Below are positions 13,519-36,567 of a DNA stretch of 64,000 nt, piece after piece (position 1 is the first letter of the stretch; each line of letters opens with the position of its first letter). The notes beneath the pieces are model-generated. The model was not told the origin of the DNA. It did no database searches and saw nothing but the letters and a program-made list of their open reading frames with translations. The translations under genes were made by a program, and so were the position numbers. The stretch lies in IMG/VR virus record IMGVR_UViG_3300028920_000001, positions 310,001 through 374,000 of that record. One strand, given 5' to 3'.

Positions 13519-13533
13519 TACTTAATATGTAAT

Positions 13534-14808
13534 ATGAGTGACGATATTCATGGCTTTATTTTAAGTGAAGCCGCACTTTATTCATTTAAAGCTCAGGATG
13601 TATTTCCTGACTTAATTAGTTTCTGTGCTGCTATTCCGGATCATTTACGACCGTTATTTTTAATTCCAATTCAACTTGATACTAATTCTGATGTTCCCTA
13701 CGGGAATTTGGCTTCCGTGGCTTCTAGAGTGGCTTCATATACTTATATGGATGGTATGCACAATGCTACTCCAGAAGGGGAACTATTTAGCTATCAAACC
13801 TTTGTTTATGACGAAGATGAACCACCTTTAATTCCTAGTTCTGAACCTGGTTCAATTCACAATAAAGATACTGGTCCAACTAAAACGCATCATCAAGAGG
13901 ATCCTGAGGAGGACGAGAATATTCAAGTTCCAACTGATACTTCATATATGTCAGATGTGGATATGACCCAATATTGGGATTATCCATATCGAAGTGAAGA
14001 ACAACCTCGTCACTCTTCAATTATGATTGCTGCTCGTTCTTTAGCTCGGAGAGTTGCCCTTAAAACTGAACAGCTTGAGACTAAGGCTCCGGAAGAAATT
14101 CAAGATCGGGCTGAGACTTGTTTGGTCAATTTTATTTCTTATGATAAGAGGGGTCGAGTTTTTACTTTTGAAGTAAATTGTGGAAATGTTCCTCGGACGG
14201 TTAGAGCAGCCATGTCAGATATTGATCATGTTGCTTTGACGTGTAATTGTCCGTTTTGGCAATACGGTGGTCCTGAATTTCATGCTAAAGAGAACCGTTA
14301 TCTTTTAGGTCCTCCTCGGGGAACTGCTACTCCTCCTGATATTCGAGATCCAGATAGAAAATTTTTTCTTTGTAAACATGCTTATGCTGTTTTAGCTCGC
14401 CTTGATCATTTTGTAGAACGAATTGTTGAGGAGAATTGGGACTTGGATGATGCAGAATTACTAGAAATAATTGATAAAGAATGGGATAAACTTGAGCCTA
14501 CTGCTCAGATTGATCTTGATGAAGCTATAGAGGAAGAACCCGAAATAGAGGAAATAGAAGAAGAGCCTGAGGGGGCTGAAGAAGAGCCTGAAGAGGCTGA
14601 GGCTGAGGTTGAAGAAGAGTCTGAAGAGCCTGAGGTTGAAGAAGAGCCTGAGGAGGCTGAGGCTGAAGAGCCTGAGGAGGCTGAGGAGGCTGAGCCTGAG
14701 GAGGCTGAGGCTGAGGCTGAAGAGCCTGAGGAGGCTGAGGCTGAAGAGCCTGAGGAGGCTGAGGCTGAAGAGCCTGAGGCTGAAGAAGAGGAAGAAAAAG
14801 AAAAATAG
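13534..14808 (+). CDS. SWIM zinc-finger protein with long acidic tail
   Basis: LTCNCPFW...FLCKHAYAVL (CxC...CxH); C-terminal ~95 aa of E/A/P repeats. Confidence 0.75.
   Translation: MSDDIHGFILSEAALYSFKAQDVFPDLISFCAAIPDHLRPLFLIPIQLDTNSDVPYGNLASVASRVASYTYMDGMHNATPEGELFSYQTFVYDEDEPPLIPSSEPGSIHNKDTGPTKTHHQEDPEEDENIQVPTDTSYMSDVDMTQYWDYPYRSEEQPRHSSIMIAARSLARRVALKTEQLETKAPEEIQDRAETCLVNFISYDKRGRVFTFEVNCGNVPRTVRAAMSDIDHVALTCNCPFWQYGGPEFHAKENRYLLGPPRGTATPPDIRDPDRKFFLCKHAYAVLARLDHFVERIVEENWDLDDAELLEIIDKEWDKLEPTAQIDLDEAIEEEPEIEEIEEEPEGAEEEPEEAEAEVEEESEEPEVEEEPEEAEAEEPEEAEEAEPEEAEAEAEEPEEAEAEEPEEAEAEEPEAEEEEEKEK
14560..14795 (+). repeat. Low-complexity tandem repeat encoding (EEPEEAEA)n
   Basis: Repeated GAAGAGCCTGAGGAGGCTGAGGCT units. 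Confidence 0.85.
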
Positions 14809-14819
14809 TATAGTGATAT

Positions 14820-15236
14820 ATGTTATATGATTATGAATGTACTAAATGTGGGAATATTCAAGAAGAAGAAGCTAGGGTAGCTGAATTTAAAGAATTTGAG
14901 CCTACCTGCAATGAATGTGGGGGTAAATGTAAATATCATTTTACCCCAACTGTGATTCAGTTTGCTTTAAAAGATGGCCCATCTGGATCTTGGCCATCTA
15001 AGGGAAACAGATTTAAAAATTATCGAGCTAAGCAGAGCGAGGCGGTTAAAAAGCGTCAACGTGAAAGATATGGGGGTGGTAATAAATTAATTCCGAATTA
15101 TAGAGGCCAACGGACCGAAGATTGGCGGGAAGCTCAATCTATGGCTATGCAAGATAAAGATAATCCTGATTCTTTAGCGACTGCATCTACTTATAACGAA
15201 CAAATCAACAAAGAGAAGGCCGCTAAAGCTAAATAG
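14820..15236 (+). CDS. FmdB-family zinc-ribbon protein
   Basis: MLYDYECTKCG...PTCNECGG. Confidence 0.75.
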   Translation: MLYDYECTKCGNIQEEEARVAEFKEFEPTCNECGGKCKYHFTPTVIQFALKDGPSGSWPSKGNRFKNYRAKQSEAVKKRQRERYGGGNKLIPNYRGQRTEDWREAQSMAMQDKDNPDSLATASTYNEQINKEKAAKAK

Positions 15237-15274
15237 TTTAATTCCCAGGCCTTTAATTTCTCAGTAAATCCGAG

Positions 15275-15964
15275 ATGCCTCGATCTATATCTGTAACTCG
15301 TCGTAAGCCAGATTTAATTGATTTGTTCGTTGAGAAACGAGCAGGTGTGACTGGGTTCCAGTTTTCTGTAGCTGCTAATTTTGACTCTGCTTTAACTGTT
15401 TTTCAGGAAATACCAATTTATGGATATGCTTCCCCTTCAGTTATAGGAAACGCTACTATTAATAAGTATGCTGGGGCGATAGGCAATCAGTATCGGAATA
15501 AAACTCGGTTTGTATTTGCTCCGTCTGATTATACTGCGTCTGTTGCTGCGATGCGCGATGATAAGCCTATATATTTAAGTATTAAACAGCGAAATGCTGA
15601 TGGTAGTTTAGGTGCCGCTGAAGCATTACATATGATTGTGCCTCCTCCATGGCCTGGTCGCCGGCCGATCATGTTACGTGGAACAGTTCCACTTGGTGCT
15701 AATATAGCAGCTTCTTTGGAAATCCAGCTTCCTATGTCTTGTTATGATTGGGAGATTCAAAATGGCGGAGCTGCTGATATGTATATTGCTTTTGAGCGGG
15801 GTGTAGGAACTACAACAGATCCGGAATTCAGACTACCTCCTGCTACTTCAGTATTTAGGAGTTTAGAGCAGTACGCAACTAATATTTCTCAAATATTTTT
15901 GCGGGGAGCCGGTGCTAGCACAATAATTGATGGAATATTTACGGCACGTAATGAAGAACTTTAA
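15275..15964 (+). CDS. Putative virion structural protein
   Basis: Beta-rich 229 aa in structural gene run. Confidence 0.6.
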   Translation: MPRSISVTRRKPDLIDLFVEKRAGVTGFQFSVAANFDSALTVFQEIPIYGYASPSVIGNATINKYAGAIGNQYRNKTRFVFAPSDYTASVAAMRDDKPIYLSIKQRNADGSLGAAEALHMIVPPPWPGRRPIMLRGTVPLGANIAASLEIQLPMSCYDWEIQNGGAADMYIAFERGVGTTTDPEFRLPPATSVFRSLEQYATNISQIFLRGAGASTIIDGIFTARNEEL

Positions 15965-16004
15965 TTGTGGCTCTTTAATTGAGGTCCTAATTTAGGAGAA
16001 TTTC

Positions 16005-16568
16005 ATGGCTATCACCTATCTCAGAGTTGTAAACGAGCAGACTCTTAACCGCAGCATCTTGCTGGATAAAATTGATCGTGCTCAGGGAAATTTTGAGGGA
16101 TATGCTCAGAGAGTAAGGCATAAGGAACAAATTTATGTTCCTTATTCGAATCCACTTGATGCAAATGTCAAGGGATATTCTGACTTAATTGCCGGTGATC
16201 AAGTTTTAATGCAAGCTGAACCTGAAGGCAGTATTGGTGGATTGGTGGCAGCTGGTAAGCTTTCAGCTGCTTTGGTTAGCTCGACATTGGTAGCCACTCC
16301 TACTTTGACTAATGCTCAAGCCAATACTCCTGCTGGTAGCTCAACCTATACTGGGACTACATTTTTATCAGTTTCTCCTGATATCACTTATCTTGAATTG
16401 ACTAATGCAGGTGGCGGTATTCAGGTGATTGATGAAACATCATTTACTACTCATACAGCTACTTCTATTGTTATCCCTGATGCCAGTGTAACCGGTACAC
16501 CTGTTGCTGGTTGGAAGGCCAGGATTTTTGCGAACTCCAAGTGGAGTAACCAGTTCACGCTTGTCTAA
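16005..16568 (+). CDS. Putative virion structural protein (Ig-like C-terminus)
   Basis: SD AGGAG; T/A/G-rich beta composition; ends NSKWSNQFTLV. Confidence 0.65.
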   Translation: MAITYLRVVNEQTLNRSILLDKIDRAQGNFEGYAQRVRHKEQIYVPYSNPLDANVKGYSDLIAGDQVLMQAEPEGSIGGLVAAGKLSAALVSSTLVATPTLTNAQANTPAGSSTYTGTTFLSVSPDITYLELTNAGGGIQVIDETSFTTHTATSIVIPDASVTGTPVAGWKARIFANSKWSNQFTLV

Positions 16569-16586
16569 GAGACAGAGGAGAATACA

Positions 16587-17408
16587 ATGCGCGTAGCAAT
16601 GGTACGAACTGATCTTGATCGGATCTATCTCTCGGATCTCGAGAATAGCTCCCAGCGAAACTTCTCAAGTGAGCCGGTTGGGCAGAGTCGTTATGTTCAC
16701 CGTTTGACGGCGGCTGAGATTACGACTTTGTTAAGTGCAAATGCTCCTCTAACTCTGCTCGGATCTGTCGGTGCTGCGACGTTTGATACGTCAGTAAACG
16801 ATACCCTTGAGATCGGAACAGCGGCTGGTGTATTCACCGCAATTTCGGTTACCTCAGGTGCTGCCACTCCGATCGCAACTATAGTTGCTGATCTGAATGC
16901 TGGGTTCCTTGCCAATAATTTACCATTTGTAGCTGAGGCTTCTACAGATGCTGGTACCCTGAATCAGGTACGTATCAATACCACGACTCTTGGTCCGAGT
17001 GCTACATTGTACACGGATACGTTTGCTGGTGGCTCAACTCTGAATACTCCGCTTGGTCTGACCGATGGTGCGTCTCTTACGGGTTTAACTGCTGCCGCAT
17101 TTGCCGCTGCGGTTTATACTGGCGCACTTCCTAATCAAGATGTAGATATCACAGATGCTACTCTTCAGGGTCTTTCTACGTTTGATGATTTGGAAGATGC
17201 TGACGAAGCGGTTCTGCTTTTGGCGATTCGGGATGCTGTGGCTCCTAGAATTGTTGAAACTGGACAAGCTTTGCTGTCGTTTGCCTACGGTGTCACAGGT
17301 AAATTGACGGATGTGACTCTTCAGCCTGGTGGGACTCGAGCTGGCTATGCTGCAGGACGGGCTGCGGTGGTGAAGCTAGACGACGGGTCCGCTAATTTCA
17401 CTATTTAA
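16587..17408 (+). CDS. Putative virion structural protein sharing a module with tail-sheath insertions
   Basis: SD GAGGAG; VNDTLEI...IATIVADLNAG...QVRIN...LNTPLGL resembles sheath TNDTLTV...ATDIANDINGAG...HLRLN...ANGILGF. Confidence 0.65.
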   Translation: MRVAMVRTDLDRIYLSDLENSSQRNFSSEPVGQSRYVHRLTAAEITTLLSANAPLTLLGSVGAATFDTSVNDTLEIGTAAGVFTAISVTSGAATPIATIVADLNAGFLANNLPFVAEASTDAGTLNQVRINTTTLGPSATLYTDTFAGGSTLNTPLGLTDGASLTGLTAAAFAAAVYTGALPNQDVDITDATLQGLSTFDDLEDADEAVLLLAIRDAVAPRIVETGQALLSFAYGVTGKLTDVTLQPGGTRAGYAAGRAAVVKLDDGSANFTI

Positions 17409-17419
17409 TATTTGCCTCT

Positions 17420-17452
17420 TTGACCCCGGGTTTATTCTCCGCCCGGGGTCAA
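17420..17452 (+). terminator. GC-rich hairpin, probable terminator
   Basis: TTGACCCCGGG (17420-30) pairs with CCCGGGGTCAA (17442-52) just after stop 17408. Confidence 0.7.
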
Positions 17453-17506
17453 GAGTATTTCGTCAATTTTTTCTTAGTAAGGTTACTAAAATCATACGGA
17501 TATGAG

Positions 17507-17743
17507 ATGAGTACATCTGAAGAAATTGAAGTTCATGATATTTATTTTGCTGCTTATCTTAAAGTAGCTGAATGTGAATTGACTCGCCGCCGTAAGGAAG
17601 GCAGCCGATGGTATTTCGTATTCATTAATCCAGCAGGATCTTTAACTCAACTTCGTGAGGATTATTATTCAGGTAAAGGAAAAGTTTCTGCTGTTCGATA
17701 TGCTCAAGAAATTCAGAACATGAAACAGATGTGTTTCGGCTGA
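17507..17743 (+). CDS. DUF5659-like small phage protein
   Basis: Start moved to ATG 17507, downstream of the hairpin; DIYFAAYL...WYFVF...YYSG...VSAVRYAQEI. Confidence 0.65.
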   Translation: MSTSEEIEVHDIYFAAYLKVAECELTRRRKEGSRWYFVFINPAGSLTQLREDYYSGKGKVSAVRYAQEIQNMKQMCFG

Positions 17744-17794
17744 TTCGAAGGATCAAATTACACTAGAATTTTTATCAGCGTTTTCATATGAAAC

Positions 17795-18535
17795 ATGAAG
17801 GAAAAAACAATAAGAAAAATTTGTCCACTTTGCGGTAAAGAATATTTTACTATTCATAGGGATTCAAAATTCTGTAGTAGAATTTGTTCAAATAAAAATA
17901 GGCGTAGATCAGATGAGAATGGGTTCTTTGATAGGGTATGTAAAAATTGTGGGATAAGATTTAAGACTAAGAGATCATCTAACTATTGTAGTACTCAATG
18001 TTATTCTAAATTAAAATTTGGTGTAAGGGATTTTCCAGAGCCTCTTCCTGTACAAGGTGCACGATGGGTTGAATTAGGATATGGGACTTTTTCTTTAATT
18101 GATGAAACAGATTATGAATTAGTTTCCAATGTTCTTTGGAGATTGCATAAGCGTGGCTATGCTTATCGATTGGTTAAAGGTCAAAATATATATTTGCATC
18201 GTTTTATTATGGAATCACATTTAGGGAAAATCCGAGAGACTATAGATCATATTAACGGGGATAAACTAGATAATCGAAAGTGCAATCTTAGAGTAGCTAC
18301 TCAATCTCAAAATAATGCAAATCAAAAAATGCAAGAAAATACTACTAGTGAATACAAAGGTGTTTGTTTTAATCGAAATCTAAAAGCCAACTGTTGGAGG
18401 GCCTATATTCGACATAATTATAAAATGATTAATATAGGATCTTTTTCATCTGAAGAAGCAGCTGCTCGAGCTTATGACCAAAAAGCCAAAGAGTTGTTCG
18501 GTACATTTGCGAAGCTAAATTTTCCAGAGTCTTAG
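17795..18535 (+). CDS. HNH homing endonuclease with AP2 DNA-binding domain
   Basis: IDHINGDKLDNRKCNLR; SEYKGV...WRAYI...IGSFSSEEAAARAYD...LFG.FAKLNF; N-terminal CxxC repeats. Confidence 0.9.
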   Translation: MKEKTIRKICPLCGKEYFTIHRDSKFCSRICSNKNRRRSDENGFFDRVCKNCGIRFKTKRSSNYCSTQCYSKLKFGVRDFPEPLPVQGARWVELGYGTFSLIDETDYELVSNVLWRLHKRGYAYRLVKGQNIYLHRFIMESHLGKIRETIDHINGDKLDNRKCNLRVATQSQNNANQKMQENTTSEYKGVCFNRNLKANCWRAYIRHNYKMINIGSFSSEEAAARAYDQKAKELFGTFAKLNFPES

Positions 18536-18569
18536 GAATTTGATAAGGTGCTAATTCTTTATTCCAAAT

Positions 18570-18974
18570 ATGAGTCGTCAAGTATCCGGTGGACAGGTCA
18601 TTCATGACCAATTAGATATTTATTCTCCAAATACGATAACTCGATTGATTGGAGTTACTATACCTCAAATCGAGCTTTTAGTATTTACAAATAACGTTGA
18701 TCAAAATTGGGTATTAGCTGACGGATCAGCCGTACTAGATACTGGTATATCTTCAGGCACAGTCTATTTTGATGAATTAACTACAAATTCTGGATATTAT
18801 CGAGTTAGATTCTTTCCAGGTCAAGTTGGATTTTGGAGGTTGATTTATAAATTACCATCAATTCAAACTGAAATCATTAAAGAATATGATATACTGGCAG
18901 TGGGGGCACTACAGCCCGGACCTAATGTTCGCGGCTTGGTTTCTAGTTTTGAGTCAAGCGGTAGTTCATGCTAA
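18570..18974 (+). CDS. Putative virion structural protein
   Basis: Beta-rich; GYYRVRFFP...GFWRLIY Ig-like segment. Confidence 0.6.
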   Translation: MSRQVSGGQVIHDQLDIYSPNTITRLIGVTIPQIELLVFTNNVDQNWVLADGSAVLDTGISSGTVYFDELTTNSGYYRVRFFPGQVGFWRLIYKLPSIQTEIIKEYDILAVGALQPGPNVRGLVSSFESSGSSC

Positions 18975-18975: not shown

Positions 18976-20217
18976 ATGGCTCTCCTTTTTGTCAATTCGG
19001 GTATCCCTGCTGGACGCTTGCAGCTCTCTTTATTTAATCTAGAGGGTTATCCGCAAGATGCCTATAACGTAGGATATACTATATTTAAACAAGACGGAAC
19101 TCAAGTATCTGGACGTAATATTCCTGCAGTTAAAGTTGACACTGGAAGATATGAAGCTTCATGGGCTTGTTCTAATGTAGGTGGATGTTACAAAATTAAA
19201 TGGGAATATAAACCGGAATCTGGGCGCTCTGTTGAAATAATTTGTGATGATTTCTTTGTAGTTTCTCCTTCTTTTTATCAAAATTTCTTGGCGGGAGCCG
19301 CTTCTGGTCAGCCTCTTAGTACAACTTGTAAAGCGTTCTATTGTGGTCAGGCTCTCGGCGATGGTGATTTAAGTCTATATCTGAAAGATGCAAATGGATT
19401 TCCTGCTAATGCTTATGCAGTTTTTTGGTCCATAATTGATTGTTGTACTGGTTGTCCTTTAATTCAAAGAACTGAAGCTACTCCTGGAGCTGAAATTGGT
19501 TCGTATTATGCAAATTGGTTTGTTAATTTAACCGGAGGTGAATATAAGGTAAAATGGGAATGGATGGAGGAAGCTGATTCTCCATTAGAATCAGCTTGCA
19601 TGACATTTTCTATAATTTGTAATAATTTATTCAATGTTCTCGGAGAGTGTGTTACATCTGAATCTTTTTGTGTTTCTCCGGATGGATTAGATACCTGTTG
19701 CATAATTAAGAAAATTTATATCCCAGTTTCAAATCCTTGTAGCCCAGTTGGTCCAGGAATACCGGTGGTGCCAGTGACTGATCAATGCTGCCCATTTGAA
19801 ATCCCTCGAGTAGTTCATTTAATTACTCAAGTTTTGCCTGCAGGAGGCGCCTATACTACACAACCTGTTTATGAAATTCCGTCTAGAATTCGTAAAATAA
19901 TGTTCTACGTGACTTATAAGAGAGGAATAGCTGGTGGTTATGCTAATTTCAGATTGATGTGGGGAAATGGAACTGAAGAAATTCAATCTACTATGATTGA
20001 TTTAGATTTTGTGAATATAAATACGGCTAGATCTAGACAAGATGCATTTATGAATGATTTTAAAGGACCTGAACCAATAAATGATAATCAAGTAAATTTT
20101 GCATTTGAAGTTAATGTGCCAGGAGGTTCAACTACAGTCAGATTGCTTGCGTCTGAAGGTGGACAGGTAGGAGCGCCTGGGATAATAAGTATTACCTTAA
20201 CTGCTGCGAGTGATTAG
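18976..20217 (+). CDS. Cys-rich putative virion structural protein with two copies of a neck-protein-like domain
   Basis: Start at MALLFVNSG; two repeats similar to the N-terminus of 41408..42301; about 17 Cys. Confidence 0.65.
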
Positions 20218-23200
20218 TGGCTGTTCAGAATCCCCGTGGTAAAAAACCAGGTGCAACTGGTGCAACCGGGCCTCCTGGTCCGACTGGGCCACAAGGTGTA
20301 ACTGGTTTACAAGGGCCTCCTGGTTCACCAGGTGCTACAGGACCACAGGGATCACCAGGTGCTACAGGACCACAGGGATCACCGGGTGTCACAGGTCCAC
20401 AAGGTGTTACTGGTGTAATTGGTCCACAAGGTGCCACTGGACCACAAGGTATTCAGGGATCGCCTGGTCCTGCAGGTCCACAAGGTATTCAGGGATCGCC
20501 TGGTCCTGCAGGTCCACAAGGACCCACTGGATCAATTGGTCCACAAGGTGTTACTGGTTCCCTTGGCCCCACTGGTCCACAAGGATCACAGGGTTCCCCG
20601 GGTGTTACTGGATTACAAGGTGTTCAGGGTTCCCCTGGCCCCACGGGTCTACAAGGATCACAGGGTTCCCCTGGCCCCACGGGTCCACAAGGTTCTACTG
20701 GTCCACAAGGTTCTACAGGTCCCCAGGGTCCTACTGGTGCCACTGGTCCACAGGGTGCCACTGGTCCACAGGGTTCCACTGGTCCACAGGGTGCAACTGG
20801 TTTACAAGGACCAACTGGTGTTACTGGACCACAAGGCTCACCAGGCACTACTGGACCACAAGGTTCCCCTGGACCACAAGGTTCCCCTGGACCACAAGGT
20901 GCTACAGGAATTCAAGGACCAACTGGACCACAAGGCGTAACAGGACCACAAGGAATTCAAGGTACTCCTGGCCCTCGAGGCGCTACTGGTTTACCTGGTC
21001 CTCCAGGATTGCAAGGTAATCAAGGTTCACCGGGTGTTACTGGACCACAAGGAATTCAGGGATCGCCTGGTGTTACTGGATCAACTGGTCCTACTGGTCC
21101 CCAAGGTGCCACTGGTCCCCAAGGTACACAGGGAGTAACTGGTCCTCAGGGAGTAACTGGTTCTACAGGCCCTACTGGTCCCCAAGGTGCAACAGGACCA
21201 CAGGGAATTCAGGGTGCCACTGGTTTACAGGGTGCCACTGGTTTACAGGGTCCTAATGGTGTCACAGGAGCTACTGGTCCCCAAGGTGCAACTGGTCCCC
21301 AAGGTGCCACAGGTGTTACGGGTCCTACTGGACCACAAGGGGCAACAGGACCACAAGGGGCAACAGGACCACAAGGGGCAACAGGACCACAAGGAATTCA
21401 GGGTACCACTGGCCCAACTGGACCACAGGGTGCAACTGGTCCCCAAGGTGCCACTGGACCACAGGGTGCAACAGGACCGCAGGGTATAACTGGCCCAACT
21501 GGTCCTCAAGGTAGTCCAGGTGTTACTGGACCACAAGGTATTCAGGGTCCTACGGGTCCCCAAGGTCCTACGGGTCCCCAAGGTTCTACGGGTCCCCAAG
21601 GTCCTACGGGTTTAAAAGGTGATCAAGGCAGTCCAGGTATAACTGGTGCGACAGGCCCTACCGGACCCCAGGGCGAAACAGGTGTACAAGGCACCCCTGG
21701 GTCAACTGGTCCCCAAGGCGTTACTGGTTTACAGGGTGCAACTGGTGCAACTGGGCCTCAAGGTTCGCCTGGTGTTACTGGCCCCCAGGGTGCAACTGGT
21801 GTTCAAGGTCCTACAGGTGTTCAAGGTCCTACAGGCCCTACTGGACCACAAGGCGTAACAGGACCACAAGGAATTCAAGGTACTCCTGGCCCTCGAGGCG
21901 CTACTGGTTTACCTGGTCCTCCAGGATTGCAGGGCCCACAAGGTAGTCCAGGCATAACTGGTGCACTTGGTCCTACGGGTCCTATTGGTACTACAGGTCC
22001 ACAAGGCGCTACGGGTCCACAGGGTGCTACAGGATTACAAGGCGCTACAGGATTACAAGGACCAACAGGCGCTACAGGTCCCCAGGGTGCAACTGGTCCC
22101 CAGGGTGCAACTGGTCCACAAGGTGCTACAGGATTACAAGGACCAACAGGTCCCCAGGGTGCAACTGGACCACAAGGCGTTACAGGTCCCCAAGGTGCAA
22201 CTGGTTTACCAGGCGCAACTGGTTTACCAGGCGCAACTGGATCAACTGGACCACAAGGCGTTACAGGTCCCCAAGGTGCAACAGGATTACAAGGACCAAC
22301 AGGTGCTACAGGACCAACAGGTGCTACAGGACCACAAGGCGCTACAGGTCCCCAAGGTAGTCCAGGTGTTACTGGCTCACAGGGTATTCAAGGACTAACA
22401 GGTGCTATTGGTCCCACTGGACCACAAGGATTACAGGGTAGTCCAGGTGTTACTGGGGTTACGGGTCCACAGGGTGATCAAGGCTCACCTGGTGTTACTG
22501 GTCCACAAGGATCACCGGGTGTCACAGGTCCTACGGGTTCACAAGGTGATCAGGGCTCTCCGGGTGTTACTGGTCCTACAGGTCCCCAAGGTGATCAGGG
22601 TTCTCCAGGTGTCACAGGCCCTCAAGGATCACCGGGTGTTACAGGTTCTATAGGTTCACAGGGATCACCTGGAGTCACAGGTCCCCAAGGTGATCAGGGC
22701 TCCCCAGGTGTCACAGGAGCTACAGGTCCCCAGGGATCACCAGGTGTTACCGGTCCGACTGGACCCACTGGACCGCAGGGTGATCAAGGCTCTCCGGGTA
22801 TTACCGGCTTTACTGGTCCACAGGGTGATCAAGGCTCCCCAGGTGTCACAGGTCCTACAGGCCCCCAAGGTGATCAAGGATCACCAGGTCCTACAGGCCC
22901 CCAAGGATCACCGGGTGTTACAGGTCCAACCGGACCGCAGGGTTCCCCCGGAATCACAGGTCCCCAAGGTTCTCCCGGAATCACAGGTCCCACAGGCCCT
23001 CAAGGTGATCAAGGCTCACCTGGTGTTACAGGAGCCATAGGCCCTCAAGGCTTCCCGGGTGTTACCGGTCCTACAGGTCCACAGGGTGTTACCGGTCCTA
23101 CAGGCCCCCAGGGCTCACCTGGTGTCACAGGATCACAAGGTGATCAAGGATCACCTGGAGTTACCGGTCCTACAGGTTCCCGGGGCGCCACCGGTACTCA

Positions 23201-26200
23201 GGGTGATCAAGGGTCACCTGGTGTCACAGGCCCTACAGGCCCTCAGGGTGTCACCGGTACTCAGGGTGATCAAGGATCACCTGGTGTCACAGGCCCTCAA
23301 GGATCACCTGGTGTCACAGGCCCTACAGGTCCAACAGGTCCCCAAGGTGTCACAGGCCCTACAGGCCCTCAGGGTGATCAGGGATCACCTGGAATTACGG
23401 GCACTATTGGTCCAACAGGTCCCCAGGGTGAGACAGGTGTTCAAGGAATTCAAGGAAGTCCTGGAGTAACAGGTGCTACAGGTCCTGCTGGATCTGCTAC
23501 TGGAGTCACCGGTCCCCAGGGGCCACAGGGGAGTCCAGGTGTCACAGGTTCTATAGGTCCACAAGGCAGCCCTGGTGTCACAGGTTCCCAGGGCGCTACA
23601 GGCCCACAAGGTTTCACCGGTCCCCAGGGGTCACCTGGTGCTACAGGCCCACAAGGTGTCACAGGCCCTCAGGGTGATCAGGGCTCACCTGGTGTCACCG
23701 GTCCAGTAGGGGCTACTGGATCCCAAGGTGCTCAAGGCTCACCTGGAGTTACAGGATTTACTGGGCCACAAGGCTCACCTGGAGTCACAGGTCCCCAAGG
23801 CTCACCTGGTGTCACTGGTTCTACAGGCCCCCAAGGTGTTCAAGGTTCACCAGGTGTCACGGGTCCACAAGGTTCACCTGGAGTCACAGGTCCCCAAGGT
23901 GTCACTGGTCCTATAGGTTCAACAGGTCCCCAAGGTGTTACAGGATCTACAGGTCCCCAAGGTCCCCAAGGCTCACCTGGAGTCACAGGTCCAACAGGCC
24001 CTCAAGGCGTCACAGGTCCACAGGGTGTTACCGGTTTTATAGGCCCTCAAGGCTCACCAGGTGTAACGGGTCCAACAGGTCCCCAAGGCGATCAGGGTTC
24101 TCCAGGTGTTACAGGGGCTACTGGACCTCAAGGTCCTACAGGCCCCCTGGGTGTCACAGGTCCAACAGGTCCCCAAGGCGATCAGGGAAGTCCTGGAATT
24201 ACTGGTGCGACAGGGGCTACTGGTCCTACAGGTCCCCAAGGTGTTACTGGACCACAGGGTGATCAGGGTTCACCAGGTGTCACAGGTCCACAAGGTGTCA
24301 CAGGTCCTACAGGCCCACAGGGTTCACCTGGAGTCACCGGTCCCATAGGTCCAACAGGTCTAACAGGTCCAACAGGTCCACAAGGGGTTACTGGTTCTAC
24401 AGGCCCTCAAGGCGAAACAGGGGTTACTGGTTCTACAGGCCCCCAAGGTGATCAAGGATCCCCGGGTGTTACAGGTCCTACTGGACCCCAAGGAGTCCAG
24501 GGATCACCAGGTGTTACAGGGGTAACTGGACCCCAAGCATCACCTGGTGTCACTGGTCCAGTAGGGGCTACTGGATCCCAAGGTGCTCAAGGCTCACCTG
24601 GAGTTACAGGATTTACTGGGCCACAAGGCTCACCTGGAGTCACAGGTCTTACAGGCCCCCAAGGTGCTCAAGGATCACCTGGAGTCACAGGCTCTACAGG
24701 TCCCCAAGGTGTTACTGGCCCACAGGGATCACCAGGTGTTACCGGGGCTACAGGCCCCCAAGGTGTCACAGGTCTTACAGGCCCCCAGGGCTCACCGGGT
24801 GTCACAGGCCCCCAAGGCTCACCGGGTGTCACAGGCCCCCAAGGCTCACCGGGTGTCACAGGCCCCCAAGGTGCTCAAGGCTCACCGGGTGTCACAGGTC
24901 CTACAGGTCCTGTTGGTCCACAGGGTGTTACTGGTTTTACTGGACCGCAGGGTGATCAGGGCAGTCCAGGTTTCACTGGTCCACAAGGTGATCAGGGCTC
25001 ACCTGGAGTTACAGGTCCTACAGGCCCCCAAGGTGTCACAGGCCCCCAAGGATCACCGGGTGTCACAGGTCCACCGGGTGTCACAGGTCCTATTGGACCG
25101 CAAGGTGATCAAGGCTCACCGGGTGTCACAGGTCCACAGGGTGATCAAGGCTCCCCGGGTGTTACAGGAGCTATAGGTGTCACCGGTCCACAAGGCGATC
25201 AGGGTTCACCTGGAGTCACAGGCCCTCAAGGTGTCACTGGTCCACAAGGTGATCAAGGCTCCCCAGGTGTTACAGGTGTTACAGGGGCTACAGGTCCACA
25301 AGGTGATCAGGGCTCACCTGGAGTCACAGGCCCCCAAGGTGTCACAGGTCCTACGGGTCCCCAAGGTGTTACCGGTTTCACAGGTTCTAAAGGTGATCAG
25401 GGTTCACCTGGAGTCACAGGTCCCCAAGGTGATCAGGGTTCACCTGGAGTCACCGGTTCTACGGGCCCTGTTGGCTTACAGGGTTCTCCAGGTGTTACAG
25501 GAGCTACAGGTCCACAAGGTGATCAGGGAAGTCCTGGTGTCACAGGTCCCCAAGGATCACCTGGTGTCACAGGCCCTACAGGCCCACAGGGTGTTCAGGG
25601 TTCACCAGGTGTCACAGGTTCTACAGGTCCACAAGGTGATCAAGGATCACCTGGAGTCACAGGAGCTTTAGGTCCAACAGGCCCCCAGGGTGATCAAGGC
25701 TCACCCGGAGTCACAGGCCCCCAAGGTGTCACAGGTCCTACGGGTCCCCAAGGTGTTACCGGTCCCCAAGGTGATCAAGGCTCCCCAGGTGTCACAGGAG
25801 CTATAGGCCCCCAAGGTGTTACCGGGGCTACAGGTCCTACGGGTCCCCAAGGTGATCAGGGATCACCTGGAATTACAGGCCCCCAAGGTGCTCAAGGATC
25901 ACCTGGAATTACAGGCCCCACAGGTCCTGTTGGCCCACAAGGCTCACCGGGTGTCACAGGAGCCACAGGTCCCCAAGGTTCTACAGGTCCACAGGGTTCA
26001 CCTGGAGTTACCGGTTCTACGGGTCCACAGGGTGATCAAGGCTCACCGGGTGTCACCGGTCTTACAGGCCCCCAAGGCTCACCGGGTGTCACCGGCCCCC
26101 AGGGTGTCACAGGTCCTACAGGTCCACAGGGTTCACCTGGAGTCACAGGTGCTACAGGACCACAAGGCGCTACAGGATTACAAGGATCAACAGGTTCTAC

Positions 26201-27434
26201 GGGTCCACAGGGTGATCAAGGATCACCTGGAGTCACAGGAGCTTTAGGTCCAACAGGCCCCCAGGGTGATCAAGGCTCCCCGGGTGTCACAGGAGCTACA
26301 GGCCCCCAAGGATCACCTGGTGTCACCGGTCCTACAGGCCCACAGGGTGTCACAGGTCCTATTGGACCGCAAGGTGATCAAGGCTCACCGGGTGTCACAG
26401 GTCCACAGGGTGATCAAGGGTCACCCGGAATTACGGGTGTCACAGGCCCTCAGGGTGATCAAGGCTCCCCGGGTGTCACAGGCCCCCAGGGTGTCACAGG
26501 TTCTATAGGTCCAACAGGTTCTATTGGACCGCAAGGTGATCAAGGCTCCCCAGGTGTCACAGGCCCCCAAGGTGTCACAGGCCCCCAAGGTGTCACAGGC
26601 CCCCAAGGTGTCACAGGTCCTACAGGCCCCCAGGGTGATCAGGGCTCACCAGGTGTCACCGGTCCTACAGGTCCCCAGGGTGATCAAGGATCACCGGGTG
26701 TTACAGGCCCCCAAGGTGATCAAGGATCACCAGGTCCTACAGGTCCACAGGGTGATCAAGGCTCTCCTGGTATTACAGGCCCCCAGGGTGATCAAGGCTC
26801 TCCTGGTATCACAGGAGCTACAGGTCCCCAAGGCGTCACAGGTCCCCAGGGTGATCAAGGCTCTCCTGGTGTCACAGGATCTACAGGCCCCCAGGGCTCT
26901 CCTGGTGTCACAGGCCCCCAAGGAGTCACAGGTCCTACGGGTCCCCAAGGTCCACAAGGTAGTCCTGGTGTAACTGGAGTTACTGGTTTTATTGGTCCTC
27001 AAGGATCGCCTGGAGTTACTGGTGCTACAGGTCCAGCTGGTGCTAGTACTGATTGGTTTAATTCTATTACAAGTAATACAACTATAACTTCAACTTCATT
27101 CGTTACTTTGTTATCTGTGAATATTACTAAAGCTACTTCTGGTTCGGTTCTTAAAATTTATGGAGTTGTTAATGGTGTTATTTCTTCTGCTCAGCAACAG
27201 ACAGAAGTTAGATTAAGAATTGATTCTACGACTTATATGGGTGGATCTCTTGATCAAGCTGCCAATACGAATGCAGCTTGTTGTTCATTTGTATACAGAG
27301 CAACTGGAATTTCGTCAGGAGCTCATACTGTAGAAATTCAAGTTAGATCAATTCAGCCTAGTCAATCAATTTATGTTAGACCTTCTACTTATCCTAATCG
27401 TGAGAGTGCTACACTGCTTGTTGAGGAGATTTAA
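20217..27434 (+). CDS. Giant collagen-like fibre protein (2405 aa)
   Basis: Gly-X-Y from residue 12 to about 2277 (about 755 triplets), Thr/Gln/Pro-rich, plus about 130-aa beta-rich C-terminal domain. Confidence 0.95.
20922..21931 (+). repeat. Exact ~92-bp direct repeat within the collagen gene (20922-21013 and 21840-21931)
   Basis: Identical DNA encoding [30 protein letters not shown], offset 918 bp (102 triplets). Confidence 0.85.
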
Positions 27435-27437
27435 TAG

Positions 27438-29783
27438 GTGGCTTCTTATAATTATTCAGTTTCCGGAGATTTTCCGAATAGCATAGTTGATAATGATCGT
27501 TTATGGGATGAGATTATTGCAGAAACTGCAATAACTGCTACACTCGAGTCAATAATAACTATTGGTGATACTTGTACAATCACGTTTGATATTGCTCTTT
27601 CAGGCGCTGAAGAAACTGCACTAGATAATGTTGTAGCTAATCATAGTGGTGAACCTAAAGCTTATCCTGAACCTATTTATAGTGATGATGTATTTACAGG
27701 GCCTTCTGCTACTGGTCCAGGTCGAGCTGGTATAATTCCAACTCCAATTGGTTCTGCTGCTGGTGTTGCTTCTGCTTATTTGCGAATTGATGGGACTTGG
27801 GATTATACTGGAGCTCTTGGCCCTACCGGGGCTCAAGGTGTAACTGGTCCACAAGGCATTACTGGAGTTACGGGTCCTCAAGGTGCAACGGGGGTCACTG
27901 GAGCCCGTGGTGCCACTGGAGTTACAGGCCCACGAGGTGCAACAGGCCCTACAGGTCCACGAGGTGCAACGGGGGTTACTGGATCACAGGGTGTTACAGG
28001 CCCACAAGGATCACCTGGAGTTACAGGCCCACGAGGTGCAACAGGCCCTACTGGTCCACAGGGATCACCTGGAGTCATTGGATCACAAGGGGTTACTGGA
28101 TCACAGGGTGTTACAGGCCCACAAGGATCACCTGGAGTTACAGGCCCTACAGGCCCACGAGGTGCAACAGGGGTCACTGGAGCCCGTGGTGCCACTGGAG
28201 TCACAGGCCCACGAGGTGCAACAGGGGTCACTGGAGCCCGTGGTGCAACAGGGGTCACAGGCCCTACAGGCCCACGAGGTGCAACAGGGGTCACTGGAGC
28301 CCGTGGTGCAACGGGGGTCACTGGAGTCCGTGGTGCCACTGGAGTCACAGGTCCACGGGGTGCCACTGGAGTTACAGGCCCTCAAGGCCCTCAAGGATCA
28401 CCAGGCGTAACTGGTGCAGGAGGAATCGTTGGTCCAGGATCTTCTACTGATAATGCTATAGTACGTTGGAATGGTACTGGTGGTAATCAAATTCAAGATT
28501 CTAATATTCTGGTTGATGATGATGGTAATATTGTAAATGCACGTACTACTCAATATGAATTATTAAGTCCTACTGCGGTTGCTTGGTCTGAGGGCATAGT
28601 TTTTTATGATGACGATCATCATACTTTAGCAGTTCATAATGACCAGTCTGATGCTACTCTTCGATTAGGGCAGGAAGAACATCTTCGTGTTTATAATAAT
28701 ACTGGATCTCAAATCAATAATGGAAGTGCCGTATATATTAGTGGTGCGAATGGGAACTTACCTACCGTAGCTTTAGCTCAATCTAATGCTTGGTCCACGG
28801 CTTATGCTGTTGGTCTTGCTACTCATGATATACCTAATGCTTCTGAGGGCATTATTACAGTTTTAGGGAATGTAACGATGGACACTACCGGGTTTTCTCC
28901 CGGTACCAGAGTTTATGTTTCTGCAGCTTCTCCTGGTTTATTAACTTCTACTTTACCCGCACAAGGAAACATTGTTGTTACAATTGGGGAAGTTATTAAT
29001 TCTGCTTCCGACGGCATGATTTATGTATCACCAAGTGGTCTTCCACTTGGTTCTAATAAGGAATTAGTTATTCCTGGCGATATTTATGTGAGCGCTAATG
29101 GTTCATCTTTATCCAACCCGCGCATTATTGGTGCGGTTGATATGACTTCTGGTGAGGGAGCTCGTTATCAATTTGGTGATGCTGCGAATGGCTGGCAGAA
29201 TGGCTATGATCAAGCTATGCAGTTGTGGGCATACCATACTATTATTCTTGAAGGTGATAGATCGAGTCTCACACCTCCTAGCATGGAGACTACTAGTAAT
29301 ATTAGTATACTAATTCGGAATACAACTGCCAGTAGTCCGGCATTAGTTGTACGTGGAGCATCTGGTCAGACAGCTAATCTTCAACAATGGCAGAGTTCTA
29401 CTCCAACAACATTGTGTAGTATTACATCATCTGGAAATTTTGATGCTAACAATCATGATTTAGATAATATTAGAACAGCTACTTTTAACGGTGTTATTGC
29501 TCATGGGTCCATGGGGTCTACAGAAACAATTAATTGGACTCAGGGTCAAAAACATTCAGGGACGAATAATGCAACCTGCACTATTAGTTTCACTAATCCT
29601 CCTGGACCTTGTAATTTGATTTTTGTATTAACAAATGGGGGAGCTTATACACTTACTTGGCCAGCTTCTGTGAATTGGGCTGGTGGATCACAACCCTCTT
29701 GGACAACAAGTGGTGTGGATATCATAGCGTTTTTCTTTGATGGGACCAACTATTTTGGAGTCGCTAGTTTGAACTTCTCATAG
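27438..29783 (+). CDS. Collagen-like tail/fibre protein (781 aa)
   Basis: 68 Gly-X-Y triplets (27810-28421); fibre modules [15 protein letters not shown]...GLATHDI; C-terminal [12 protein letters not shown]...[10 protein letters not shown] tail-fibre end. Confidence 0.9.
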
Positions 29784-29817: not shown

Positions 29818-30441
29818 ATGTCGAGCACCAAGACCGTTCGTACCTATGCCGAGTCGGAGTTCACATCGGCAACCACTGTCAACGTTGGCATCTTCCAGCA
29901 AGAGTTGGAAGATGATGCCTCGGTTACAGAAAAACCATCAGCTGTCTACAAGGCGGGCACATCTGTCATTGTAGAATGGTCTGTAGATAATGTTAGTTCA
30001 GGTACATTTAGTGCTGTTGACGCTGCTGTGGCTGCTCACGTTGGAGGGGCTTACGCAAGCGTACCCATTACGGAGATTTCGGAAGGGGAGTCTTCTGACG
30101 ACTCTGGAGATGAACAGACCAAGTTGACTCTGGACACAGGTTTGCTGCCTGCTGGGAGCTACTTGCTCGGATGGTACTGTGAACTCAAGACCGCTGGTGA
30201 AGTTGCAGCGACTGCAGCTCAGGTCAGGTTGTACGCCGACAAGAATGGCGGTGGGGAAGTGGAGCGAGGACTCTGCACTTGGCAACACTCGCAGTATCAC
30301 GATTTTGGAGGCTCCTTCCCATTCGTGGCGAAGGACGGGGATCGATACGAGCTGCGTCTGGCCTACGAACGGCTCGGGGCAAGCAGCAACGAGGTCTCGA
30401 TCCAACGGGCTCGGATGTACTGCGTGCAACTGAACAGCTAG
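29818..30441 (+). CDS. Putative fibre-associated structural protein
   Basis: SD AAGGAG; N-terminus ending VDAAVAAH resembles LDNVVANH of 27438. Confidence 0.7.
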   Translation: MSSTKTVRTYAESEFTSATTVNVGIFQQELEDDASVTEKPSAVYKAGTSVIVEWSVDNVSSGTFSAVDAAVAAHVGGAYASVPITEISEGESSDDSGDEQTKLTLDTGLLPAGSYLLGWYCELKTAGEVAATAAQVRLYADKNGGGEVERGLCTWQHSQYHDFGGSFPFVAKDGDRYELRLAYERLGASSNEVSIQRARMYCVQLNS

Positions 30442-30452
30442 TACTCTGAATA

Positions 30453-31814
30453 ATGCCCAGCTATGACAACAGTTCCTCGACCACAGCTGGTGGTGGAGGG
30501 ACTAGTTATTCTGCTAATCATACGATTGCAGCGCAAGGAAACGGCCGCATTCTCATTGCGGTGTTTTTTGCGATGGCTGGGTCGAACGCTGCCACCAAGT
30601 TCACGTCGGTGCAGTACGATGGGACTGCACCGACGGGACAACTTACTCCTGATGTAGAACACGATCGATATGGAAACTATGGGAGTATCTCAGTTTACTA
30701 TTGGCTGGAATCAGATCTACCAGCCAATGGATCGCCGACTGCTTACAATATCACGGCGACGAGTGCTACTGGTCAGTGGAATGGGCATCTAGCAGCCATC
30801 TCGTTGACGGCGGCTGCCCAGACGGCCCCTACAGCCACAGGGAGGAACGAGGCCGAGAATGCAACTTCAAGCTCGGTAAGCATCACGACCACGGACACCA
30901 ATTCAATGATTGTGGATGCTGTTGCTGTCGTAGCAAGCGACATGTCGGGAGGTGTGTCACCAACAGCAGGCCAAACCGAAGTCCAAGACATTACTGCTGC
31001 TACCGCTTATAGGTTGGGTCTCGGTTACGAAGCGGTCACGACGGCCCAAGCTTACTCTCAAACTTGGTCGTGGAGCCCCACTTGCATGTTCGACATGGAG
31101 TTTGCCGTTGCGGTAGCTCCAGGTGGTGGTGTCAACATAGAAATAGGAAACCTCGCCCAGGGTAACGCTGGTTCCAGTGTAAGCCATACTCTGACAACGA
31201 GTGCCAATCGCATCGCCATCGTCTTGATCGATGACGAATCCACCAGTCAAGCCTCAGGTGTTACCTACAACAGTGTGGCAATGACCCGGGTGGCGTACTC
31301 GACTGCGACGGCAGGTGCGGGCAACGCATCCTCTATGTGGGTAATCCTTGATGCAGATTTACCTGCTGGAGGCACTAGCTACAACGTCGTGGTCTCGGGA
31401 TTGGACTCGGGTGCGTCGGTAACTGTTGTCGAGATCAACAATGTGGCACAGGTCATTCCTACAGGGTCTCAAGTGGATACGACCGAGTCTGGTGATGTTT
31501 CTAGCTCGTCCACGACAGTCACCGCACCGGATGGTAACTCGATCTCTGTAGGAGCGCTTGGGTACGGAAACGACACAGCGACTTTCAACAGTCCGAGTGG
31601 GACGGGAACTTGGACCCGGCTGTTCACGATTTATGGTCCGCCCAGCAGTGCCTGGTATGGAGGTGCTTACCAGGCATGGACAACAGGAGGATCTAAGACA
31701 TATACCGAGAGCGTAGATACTACGTTCTTTCGAGCTTCGCATATTCAAGCGGTATTTGCAGCTTATGCTGTTGTTACGACTTATAATGCCCCATTTTTCG
31801 GGACCAATTTTTGA
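30453..31814 (+). CDS. Putative fibre/adhesion protein with duplicated beta-sandwich module
   Basis: Two repeats: SANHTI...GRILIAV...VQYDG... and SVSHTL...NRIAIVL...VTYNS...; S/T/A/G-rich. Confidence 0.7.
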   Translation: MPSYDNSSSTTAGGGGTSYSANHTIAAQGNGRILIAVFFAMAGSNAATKFTSVQYDGTAPTGQLTPDVEHDRYGNYGSISVYYWLESDLPANGSPTAYNITATSATGQWNGHLAAISLTAAAQTAPTATGRNEAENATSSSVSITTTDTNSMIVDAVAVVASDMSGGVSPTAGQTEVQDITAATAYRLGLGYEAVTTAQAYSQTWSWSPTCMFDMEFAVAVAPGGGVNIEIGNLAQGNAGSSVSHTLTTSANRIAIVLIDDESTSQASGVTYNSVAMTRVAYSTATAGAGNASSMWVILDADLPAGGTSYNVVVSGLDSGASVTVVEINNVAQVIPTGSQVDTTESGDVSSSSTTVTAPDGNSISVGALGYGNDTATFNSPSGTGTWTRLFTIYGPPSSAWYGGAYQAWTTGGSKTYTESVDTTFFRASHIQAVFAAYAVVTTYNAPFFGTNF

Positions 31815-34291: not shown

Positions 34292-34957
34292 ATGCTTGGT
34301 TTATTATCATTTAAGGGCAAAGAGTTCAGATATGAATTCATACCAGGAAATATTCCTACTGGTCAGAACCCATCTTGGTATTCATTTGTAGATGAACAAT
34401 CAGTACGCGACAGATGGTGGAATATCGAAGAAGGTGATGTTATCTTTGATGTTGGATGTGCATATGGTTCTTACACCTTGCCGGCTTTAGTATTAGGAGC
34501 CAGTCACTGTTATTGTTGGAACCCCCTTGATTCAGAAATGTCTATTTTAGCTCAATCTTTAAAGCATAATGGGTGGGAAGATAAAGCTACTTTATTTATG
34601 GCTGGGCTATATAATAAGATTGGATTTCTTAACCCAGATACTCAAGAATTTTCTCAAGAATACAAAGATGGAATGTTTGCTGTTACGACTTTAGATCAAT
34701 ATTTAGAAGATCAGAAAATTAAATTAAGTAACTCTAAATGTTGGATGAAAATGGATGTTGAAGGAGCTGAATTAGAAATTCTTAAAGGAGGAACGAAATT
34801 ATTAAATCAATTTAGACCAAATATTATAATAGAAAATCATGTATTTAAGATTGCTGATATTCAGACACAGGTTCAGTCTTTTCTGGAATCATTGAATTTT
34901 AAACATGTAGAAACTGTTCCTTATCATGCTGTATCTCATTCTTTGTATATTCCATGA
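34292..34957 (+). CDS. FkbM-family SAM methyltransferase
   Basis: IFDVGCAYGSYT; VTTLDQY; MKMDVEGAELEILKGG. Confidence 0.9.
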   Translation: MLGLLSFKGKEFRYEFIPGNIPTGQNPSWYSFVDEQSVRDRWWNIEEGDVIFDVGCAYGSYTLPALVLGASHCYCWNPLDSEMSILAQSLKHNGWEDKATLFMAGLYNKIGFLNPDTQEFSQEYKDGMFAVTTLDQYLEDQKIKLSNSKCWMKMDVEGAELEILKGGTKLLNQFRPNIIIENHVFKIADIQTQVQSFLESLNFKHVETVPYHAVSHSLYIP

Positions 34958-36566: not shown

Positions 36567-36567
36567 T

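Follow-up and report, generated by a model that had tools for sequence, protein, structure and literature searches.

What does a phage do with a collagen gene of 7.2 kb? The question is raised by the open reading frame (ORF) at 20217-27434 (+) of a 64,000-nt stretch of DNA, called the window here, which comprises bases 310001-374000 of the IMG/VR virus record IMGVR_UViG_3300028920_000001. The source record (426,960 bp, 40% GC, 92% coding under the standard code) has terminal repeats and is rated complete, and the collagen gene, at 330217-337434 in genome coordinates, is the largest gene of this genome. We propose, with moderate confidence, that its product is a homotrimeric, probably O-glycosylated virion fibre of about 650 nm with an adhesin head at its distal end. 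The parts of this proposal differ in strength. A trimer wound into a triple helix is very likely, and a role as a virion fibre with adhesin function is favoured on balance; glycosylation of the stalk stands at about even chances, and anchoring through the product of the gene immediately upstream (the partner gene) is a tentative suggestion.

Anatomy and integrity of the collagen gene

The ORF encodes 2,405 residues without an internal stop, in a frame of 2,406 codons. The protein starts with an N-terminal leader of 11 residues (20217-20249, +), as short as a first-pass annotation of this DNA had stated, which contains a conserved N-P-R-G motif (nt 20229-20240) and in which inspection of the sequence found no hydrophobic stretch resembling a signal peptide. 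There follows a collagen-like domain (20250-27047, +; residues 12-2277, 2,266 residues, 755 Gly-X-Y triplets), supported by script, Pfam and composition, and the protein ends in a non-collagen head of 128 residues, predicted to be a TNF/C1q/BclA-like jelly roll (27048-27434 including the stop codon, +; residues 2278-2405). The first-pass annotation had also described Gly at every third residue from codon 12, about 755 triplets, and only two imperfections with no other net shift of the register. A script run on the translation bears this out: Gly is strictly in register over residues 12-1094 (361 triplets), 1096-1440 (115) and 1444-2277 (278), where the register ends, and these three runs account for all 755 triplets together with an A-S-P triplet at residues 1441-1443. 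The register is thus broken at exactly the two sites that had been named. The first is G-S-A-T (23490-23501, +; residues 1092-1095), where one extra residue displaces the Gly register by one position, and the second is an Ala codon at a Gly position (24537-24539, +; residue 1441, in G-P-Q-A-S-P), just 5' of the second copy of a 94-nt exact repeat (copies at 23700 and 24555). Gly makes up about 7% of an ordinary protein, and on the sequence 753 in-register Gly out of 755 cannot be attributed to chance. About 50 matches to the Pfam Collagen family (PF01391) lie above the cut-off in this frame, and the shorter ORFs in other frames inside the gene are by-products of the repeat composition.

The X positions of the stalk are occupied by Pro (36%), Ser (19%), Val (19%), Ala (10%) and Asp (6%), and the Y positions by Thr (42%, 317 residues), Gln (37%) and Pro (16%). 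Charged residues are few, with 2 Lys, 3 Arg, 3 Glu and 45 Asp in the 2,266 residues, and KGD/KGE occurs only twice. The composition is zoned in the way previously noted, being rich in GAT and GPQ up to about residue 690 and in GDQ, GSP and GVT thereafter. A fully helical domain of 2,266 residues, at a rise of 0.286 nm each, would have a contour of about 650 nm, the same value that had been estimated before. GC at third codon positions is 0.25 in the collagen part and 0.31 in the rest of the genome; since it is low, the region owes its high GC to codons for Gly, Pro, Thr and Ala and not to foreign DNA, and by this sequence measure the gene is native to the phage genome. A scan for promoters and terminators gave nothing above shuffled expectation.

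The collagen gene is real and intact. A length of this kind could be an artefact, produced by a short-read repeat that was collapsed, expanded or joined into a chimera, and the gene is indeed repetitive at short scale (27% of its 21-mers and 10% of its 31-mers are not unique). Logan k=31 contigs are broken throughout the gene, with many spurious joints, and three of ten related contigs (L002, L009 and L015) stop inside their own collagen gene. However, the joints have short sides (21-51 nt), lie within k=31 contigs of a repeat and were treated as noise, whereas the longest exact repeat inside the gene is the one of 94 nt, all 99-mers occur once only, and identity along self-diagonals stays below 85% over 240 nt. 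The frame stays open over 7.2 kb with the Gly register maintained. Our checks of the assembly used Logan contigs (k=31) and compared the depth and exact match of unitigs inside the gene with those in its flanks. The marine-sediment run X1, which holds 92% of the sampled words and is probably the source run, has unitigs that match the collagen gene with 0 differences, at a depth of 638-912 inside the gene and 741-759 in the flanks; because these depths are comparable, no part of the gene is collapsed two-fold. Two hot-spring metagenome runs from different studies (X2 and X3) hold a strain that is 93-97% identical, recovered over the partner gene, parts of the collagen gene, the head and the start of the next gene (window 19800-28300). 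Inside the collagen gene this strain shows substitutions and frame-preserving changes only, namely indels of -18 nt and +9 nt and a compensated +1/-1 pair; its in-frame 9-nt insertion lies at 23510, just after the G-S-A-T interruption. In addition, orthologues of 1,897-3,960 residues come from independent assemblies, two of them in complete genomes of 393 and 436 kb. With these results an assembly artefact is hardly credible. Collagen genes of this family are evidently frequent break points of short-read assemblies, and giant ones are therefore probably under-counted in viral catalogues.

Head domain, partner gene and a conserved family of probable fibres

The last 134 residues, used as query, found 207 homologues (E <= 0.001) among 1.84 billion representative proteins, mostly C-terminal modules of otherwise non-collagen proteins and none with an informative name. 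The head has no match in Pfam or PDB profile searches, and among PHROGs it matches only phrog_10059 (unknown function, E 7e-4). A fold predicted from the single sequence was unusable (pLDDT 47); we used instead an AlphaFold2 model built with a 48-sequence alignment and compared it by Foldseek and VIA-align. This model is a ten-strand jelly roll (pLDDT 93.9, pTM 0.86). It resembles the TNF-like lectin PLTL (Z 14.6), the C-domain of Chlamydia Pgp3 (Z 13.6), C1q domains (Z 10-11.6), BclA (1wck) and F-BclA (9h38; Z 10.9 each), a Bdellovibrio fibre tip (Z 10.8), collagen VIII NC1 (Z 10.2), a cyanophage short-tail-fibre domain (Z 9.9) and PRD1 P5 (Z 8.9), and, among predicted structures, CTHRC1 and C1q-TNF proteins (TM 0.6-0.7). 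The Foldseek probability of the TNF/C1q-type matches is 1.00. Its viral neighbours in BFVD are proteins of uncultured Caudovirales (TM 0.80-0.84), and the BFVD matches include entries named 'minor tail protein', 'tail protein' and 'host specificity protein J'. According to the model, then, the head is a TNF/C1q/BclA-like jelly roll placed directly after the stalk. Heads of this kind align the three chains of known collagens and start their folding at the C-terminal end (PMC11923368), and by analogy the head in the window would register three chains and nucleate folding likewise.

The gene upstream of the collagen gene is conserved with it. This partner gene (18976-20217, +) encodes 413 residues from a conserved Met, in an ORF that opens at 18886, and its stop TAG shares one base with the GTG start of the collagen gene; judged from this overlap, the collagen gene is translationally coupled to it. 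The partner protein has two tandem beta-rich repeats, a linker rich in Cys and Pro and a conserved C-terminal domain. Orthologues with 40-46% identity were found in 10 IMG/VR contigs (82-436 kb), and in all ten the partner gene has a collagen ORF within 1-6 nt on its 3' side. Seven of these collagen orthologues are complete, with 848, 1,897, 1,993, 2,061, 2,295, 2,424 and 3,960 residues, and the other three are cut by contig ends. Their triplet counts range from 223 to 1,189, and the longest uninterrupted runs, in two orthologues, have 774 and 775 triplets. The collagen gene in the window is typical of this family and not extreme, and the fibres of the family would measure about 0.2 to 1 micrometre if fully helical.

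The two ends of the family behave differently. The N-termini align as M-[SGA]-[IV]-[EQD]-N-P-R-G, with the variants NPQG and NPIG, and pass directly into Gly-X-Y; the stalks are rich in Thr and Gln and nearly free of Lys and Arg, with 0-2 KGD/KGE triplets. While the N-terminus is conserved, the distal and internal heads belong to at least five unrelated sequence groups. The head family of the window recurs only in one orthologue and in one internal domain of another, the remaining orthologues terminate in globular domains of at least four further kinds, unrelated to one another, and in some the stalk itself contains one to five such domains. Phage receptor-binding proteins are marked by this pattern, in which the N-terminus is kept and the distal domains are exchanged, and a conserved virion-proximal end with a variable distal end is what we found among the relatives of this gene.

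These features suggest how the fibre may be built and used. The TNF/C1q-like jelly-roll heads would bring three chains into register, and the triple helix would zip from the head towards the N-terminus into a thin filament of about 650 nm contour length (about 1 micrometre in the longest orthologue), which would be a thread and not a strut, since so thin a rod is flexible. The conserved N-terminal motif of eight residues ending in N-P-R-G would fix this thread to the virion. As the leader is too short to fold alone, it probably docks into another protein, and the partner protein is the obvious candidate because it is translationally coupled and strictly co-occurring. The variable C-terminal head would then be the distal end and may bind a ligand of the host surface, most likely a glycan, so that the fibre would act as a long-range tether for a first, reversible adsorption step. 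The stalk would probably be stabilised by O-glycosylation, carried out by a glycosyltransferase with GT2, TPR and GT4 domains (GT2-TPR-GT4) encoded nearby and using a modified deoxysugar made by the phage.

Position in the tailed-phage genome

By its gene content the genome is that of a tailed phage. There are genes for the large terminase TerL (genome 290853-292799), a portal (genome 293496-295319), a protease-containing protein (genome 299465-302224), an HK97-type major head protein (genome 304457-305350; phrog_2522, E 1e-43), a baseplate hub (genome 387419-389074) and a Baseplate_J protein (genome 407574-411053). The TerL sequence is nearest in GenBank to that of an uncultured 485-kb phage (LR745208.1, 44% identity), followed at a great distance by a 309-kb Tunturiibacter phage (28%); LR745208.1 has neither a collagen match nor a homologue of the partner gene. 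An origin from giant viruses (Nucleocytoviricota) was rejected, since the genome carries tailed-phage head and baseplate genes; a search for Capsid_NCLDV (PF04451) gave no match, but neither did the control of that search. Two further collagen-like genes are present, one for a 202-residue protein with 20 triplets (window 63756-64000, -, running to genome 374364) and one for a 516-residue protein with 107 triplets directly after Baseplate_J (genome 411871-413421; L008:871-2421).

The collagen gene sits between the head and baseplate modules, within a long run of plus-strand genes. A product that is not part of the virion, being released at lysis or acting in the cell, such as a matrix or decoy with affinity for surfaces of the host or of competitors, would agree with the lack of a signal peptide, which would keep the protein cytoplasmic until lysis, and with the unannotated genes that adjoin it. 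However, the run of plus-strand genes around it is an uninterrupted late/structural region and a tail-fibre-like protein follows, the docking-like conserved N-terminal motif together with swapped heads fits an adhesin attached to the particle, and the annotation given to collagen-like segments in GenBank phages is almost always that of a tail fibre or minor tail protein. We consider a non-virion product improbable.

On its 5' side the partner gene is preceded by a conserved block of small genes (10684-18974, +) encoding 338, 124, 424, 138, 229, 187, 273, 107 and 134 residues. In tblastn searches most of these were matched, at 33-65% identity and in the same order, in all ten related loci, and two of them in eight or nine. 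For the gene at 16587-17408 the Atlas search gave a weak lead only, to DUF3383/sheath domain II. The block is interrupted by mobile endonuclease genes. One of them (17795-18535, +) is an HNH_3 and AP2 homing-endonuclease-like gene that has a weak counterpart in only one of the ten relatives and hence looks recently inserted and mobile. Another (12031-13518, +) encodes a REase_MTES_1575/Vsr-like domain (an HNH endonuclease in PHROGs) fused to a C-terminal Mom-family domain, and it is probably mobile, too, because only two of the ten relatives have it.

A gene that follows small conserved genes after the head genes, one of them with a weak lead to sheath-like families, might encode a tape measure, in this case a triple-helical one inside the tail tube, which would fix the tail length at about 650 nm. 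On a distant 473-kb contig the gene order of 551, 212, 73 and 111 residues and a giant collagen resembles that of sheath, tube, chaperones and tape measure. Tape measures are trimeric, and a triple helix of 1.5 nm would fit the lumen of the tube. A folded TNF-like trimer at its end would not, nor would the one to five globular domains inside the stalks of orthologues. Lengths that vary five-fold among relatives with conserved neighbour genes, and heads that are swapped like receptor-binding modules, also argue against this role. Moreover, there is a conventional candidate in a 1,270-residue protein encoded immediately 5' of the baseplate hub genes (genome 381769-385581; L006:7769-11581). It is the sole large protein of the structural region with a helix-biased composition, by a crude propensity measure, and judging from its sequence it is likely the conventional tape measure; at 0.15 nm per residue its length would correspond to a tail of about 190 nm. 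A tape measure made of collagen is in our view extremely unlikely.

Proposed stalk glycosylation, known collagens and neighbouring genes

The genes that follow support the reading of the product as a glycosylated virion fibre. Directly downstream there is a second fibre gene (27438-29783, +), identified by PHROG matches, whose product of 781 residues has a 124-residue N-domain, 70 Gly-X-Y triplets and a globular C-terminal part of about 450 residues. Outside its collagen part it matches PHROG families of tail fibres and virion proteins, with the tail-fibre families phrog_19200 at residues 663-779 (E 4e-14) and phrog_3904 at residues 694-777. In the related contig L016, four of the five globular domains of the collagen orthologue (L016:11231-17416) share S-T-D-N-A-I-V-R-W-(D/N)-G or a variant of it with the segment after the collagen part of this second fibre protein, which shows an exchange of modules between the two fibre genes. 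Just 3' of the same orthologue (L016:18212-19564) is a gene for an apiosidase-like glycoside hydrolase with a 'putative collagen-binding domain of a collagenase' (PF12904). In the window, two genes of 207 and 453 residues (29818-31814, +), without matches in Pfam, PHROG, NCBIfam or the related loci, lie between the fibre genes and a glycosylation cluster.

This cluster begins with the gene for the GT2-TPR-GT4 enzyme, a bifunctional glycosyltransferase of 803 residues assigned by Pfam (31878-34289, +), and continues with sugar-modification genes (34292-39771, +) for an FkbM methyltransferase, a GT1, a cupin, a sugar C-methyltransferase, an NDP-sugar 4,6-dehydratase-like protein and a sugar 3-dehydrogenase-like oxidoreductase. 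All six relatives tested have an orthologue of GT2-TPR-GT4, with 53-60% identity, about 4-12 kb 3' of the collagen gene. The distant 473-kb contig shows the same order, with a capsid-like gene, a giant collagen protein of 2,349 residues and then GT2/GT4, and on unrelated contigs the genes for proteins with the head domain of the window adjoin GT2 genes, namely GT2-TPR with GT1 and a methyltransferase on one and GT2 on another. The solved structures nearest to the GT2 domain are those of GmaR (E 2.4e-15), the flagellin transferase of Listeria for O-linked N-acetylglucosamine, and of the SunS-type peptide glycosyltransferases. Enzymes of the GmaR/SunS type have proteins or peptides as substrates, and recognition of a protein substrate is a common task of TPR domains. 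For the prolyl hydroxylase that would make hydroxyproline, the genome has no match to PF13640 (2OG-Fe(II) oxygenase), the only 2OG-oxygenase family searched. The peptide (Gly-Pro-Thr)10 is a random coil unless its Thr are galactosylated (PMC11923368), and the cuticle collagen of Riftia is described as having glycosylated Thr, and not hydroxyproline, at the stabilising Y position (PMC11766948, citing Mann et al. 1996). With 317 Thr at Y, few KGD/KGE triplets, no prolyl hydroxylase found and a glycosyltransferase and sugar pathway adjacent, O-glycosylation is the most economical explanation of how the stalk would be stabilised.

The same plan is known from spore formers. BclA of the Bacillus exosporium nap and F-BclA of the tip fibrillum of endospore appendages combine a very short N-terminal segment for targeting, a Gly-X-Thr-rich stalk and a trimeric TNF/C1q-like jelly roll. 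The Thr of the BclA stalk are O-glycosylated with dedicated deoxysugars (PMC8968730), and we infer a comparable modification for the phage stalk, whose gene adjoins a glycosylation cluster. However, there is no sequence homology to BclA beyond the repeats and N-P-R-G is unrelated to the exosporium-targeting motif, so that the likeness is one of architecture and fold and not of family. The stalks of Bcl proteins have 27-1,158 residues (PMC8968730), against 2,266 in the present protein, which is encoded by a phage and not by a spore former. Fibres of cultured phages and prophages with collagen-like segments (mycobacteriophages, cyanophage S-CAM7, EPclA-D of an E. coli O157 prophage, and the PHROGs named 'collagen like minor tail') likewise have a Gly-X-Y stalk joining a virion-binding end to a distal globular domain, and the second fibre gene of the window has matches to such PHROG families. 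Among 50,697 GenBank phage records, 927 match a 1,006-residue piece of the collagen protein, over spans of about 350-720 nt, and none covers 80% of it. In contrast to these fibres, the stalk described here is about ten times longer or more, its anchor has 8-11 residues instead of a folded domain, and its gene lies outside the baseplate/fibre module.

In C1q, the NC1 domains of collagens VIII and X, C1q-TNF-related proteins, CTHRC1 and ectodysplasin, a jelly-roll trimer registers the chains at the end of a stalk, as it would here (Z 10-11.6, TM 0.6-0.7), but identity to these animal proteins is 7-16%, their stalks have tens of triplets and depend on hydroxyproline, and the resemblance could be due to convergence or to very ancient descent. 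The best matches of the head are PLTL of Photorhabdus, the N-domain of BC2L-C of Burkholderia and the C-domain of Chlamydia Pgp3, all trimeric (TM 0.65-0.73, 11-17% identity); according to the titles of their entries, PLTL and BC2L-C bind fucosylated glycans at protomer interfaces. Giant viruses (mimivirus, cedratvirus) have collagen-like and GXT-repeat proteins with the same head fold (BFVD TM 0.74-0.75), and their surface fibrils are decorated by virus-encoded sugar pathways and glycosyltransferases (PMC9614988). These viruses, however, are eukaryotic and of another capsid lineage, whereas the phage genome has TerL, portal and head protein genes. The annelid cuticle collagens of Riftia and Alvinella also form very long triple helices, but they belong to an animal extracellular matrix and are unrelated in context and function.

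The resemblance to BclA leads to a second possible role on the virion. Many collagen threads on the capsid or neck could form a passive glycosylated coat, a 'hairy nap' like that of BclA on spores or of the fibrils on mimivirus, which prevents aggregation, shields the particle or sticks non-specifically to particles, biofilm matrix or sediment. The short leader, Thr-rich stalk and TNF-like knob are the architecture of the nap-forming BclA (PMC8968730), the collagen-like and GXT-repeat proteins of giant viruses share the head fold, a conserved glycosylation cluster is near, and the source is a sediment metagenome. The collagen gene is, in addition, nearer to the head genes than to the baseplate genes, and on the distant 473-kb contig an analogous gene lies 5 kb after the capsid-like gene. 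On the other hand, heads are swapped among close relatives while the N-terminus is kept, which is typical of specific host recognition, and a separate, clearly fibre-like protein is encoded next in the same operon. We regard the coat as a distinctly weaker explanation than a host-binding fibre, although one to be taken seriously; the two overlap and differ mainly in copy number and in the specificity for a ligand.

Several points weigh against the host-binding virion fibre. The protein is known from its gene alone, and we infer its production and its presence in the virion. From the gene for the major head protein to the collagen gene it is about 25 kb, and from there another 50-70 kb to those for the baseplate hub and Baseplate_J. 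The collagen gene thus falls outside the baseplate/fibre module, the canonical position of tail fibres, where other large proteins are encoded, including the 516-residue collagen-like one. The partner gene has no homologue in GenBank phages, PHROGs or PDB, and the block of small genes before it received no annotation in PHROG, Pfam, PDB-profile or Atlas searches. A prediction of the complex between the partner protein and residues 1-43 of the collagen protein scored 0.00, which counts neither for nor against binding. For the triple helix itself, structure predictors are unreliable. The head resembles lectins in fold only (11-15% identity), and on the model sugar binding is a lead only. Another virion protein or a host polymer is an equally possible substrate of the GT2-TPR-GT4 enzyme. 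Finally, the two interruptions and the exact length of the gene rest on the assembly plus the indirect checks with Logan contigs.

The collagen stalk, the TNF-like head, the phage fibre and virion glycosylation are each already known; new are the scale, the minimal N-terminal motif, whose partner is an orphan, and the conserved proximity of a gene for a protein-type glycosyltransferase. Reviews treat phage collagens as short (PMC8968730), and a database survey reports bacterial collagen polypeptides of up to 6,000 residues (PMC11923368). Among the best 120 matches in a collection of 5.8 billion proteins, the longest uninterrupted run has 393 triplets and none has an N-P-R-G start. The whole-protein homology search was rejected as a guide to ancestry, being dominated by compositional matches to animal type VII collagen, and was used for the comparison of lengths only. 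In the literature on phage and bacterial collagens we found no description of giant collagen genes in huge phages, nor of a module of partner gene, collagen gene and GT2-TPR-GT4. Collagen-only proteins of 2,775-2,871 residues (P0157, at L023:10001-18616, and P0160) are encoded on contigs that look cellular, with competence genes adjoining one and a Microgenomates label for a metagenome-assembled genome on the other; their N-terminal domains (470-515 residues) are different. Giant prokaryotic collagens are thus not confined to phages.

If the proposal is true, fibres of 0.65-1 micrometre exceed almost any known phage appendage and bear on how large, slowly diffusing virions find their hosts in sediment. 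It has been proposed that KGE/KGD salt bridges are a general folding aid of long collagens (PMC11923368), and the family is a test case against this idea, with uninterrupted runs of as many as 775 triplets, hardly any Lys or Arg and no prolyl hydroxylase detected. It also provides a genetically linked candidate set of enzymes for the stabilisation of collagen by Thr glycosylation. Work on biomaterials gains prokaryote-type collagen genes that bring their own trimerising head and far exceed in length the scaffolds of the Scl2 and Bcl type now in use (PMC8968730), and annotators of huge-phage genomes can recognise a module by its conserved trio of partner gene, giant collagen and GT2-TPR-GT4. 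A more far-reaching picture, which we put forward as speculation that may well prove wrong, is that a clade of 390-440-kb phages possesses the longest uninterrupted collagen helices so far seen in any genome (runs of 774-775 triplets; 1,189 triplets in total, about 1 micrometre), held by a new eight-residue docking motif and an orphan adaptor, with O-glycosylated Thr replacing hydroxyproline and Lys-Asp/Glu salt bridges, and that these would serve as micrometre-scale 'fishing lines' that widen the capture radius of a slowly diffusing giant virion.

Some other genes of the window deserve mention. The gene at 5123-6955 (+) encodes 610 residues with a strong match to Transgly, the peptidoglycan glycosyltransferase of penicillin-binding proteins (PF00912, E 2e-42), which is unusual in a phage. 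Just 3' of the sugar cluster, at 40287-40937 (-), there is a 216-residue nucleotidyltransferase resembling the family of ATP-dependent DNA ligases and mRNA capping enzymes. A large protein encoded at 42348-43802 (+) has an HNH domain fused to a C-terminal Mom-family domain.

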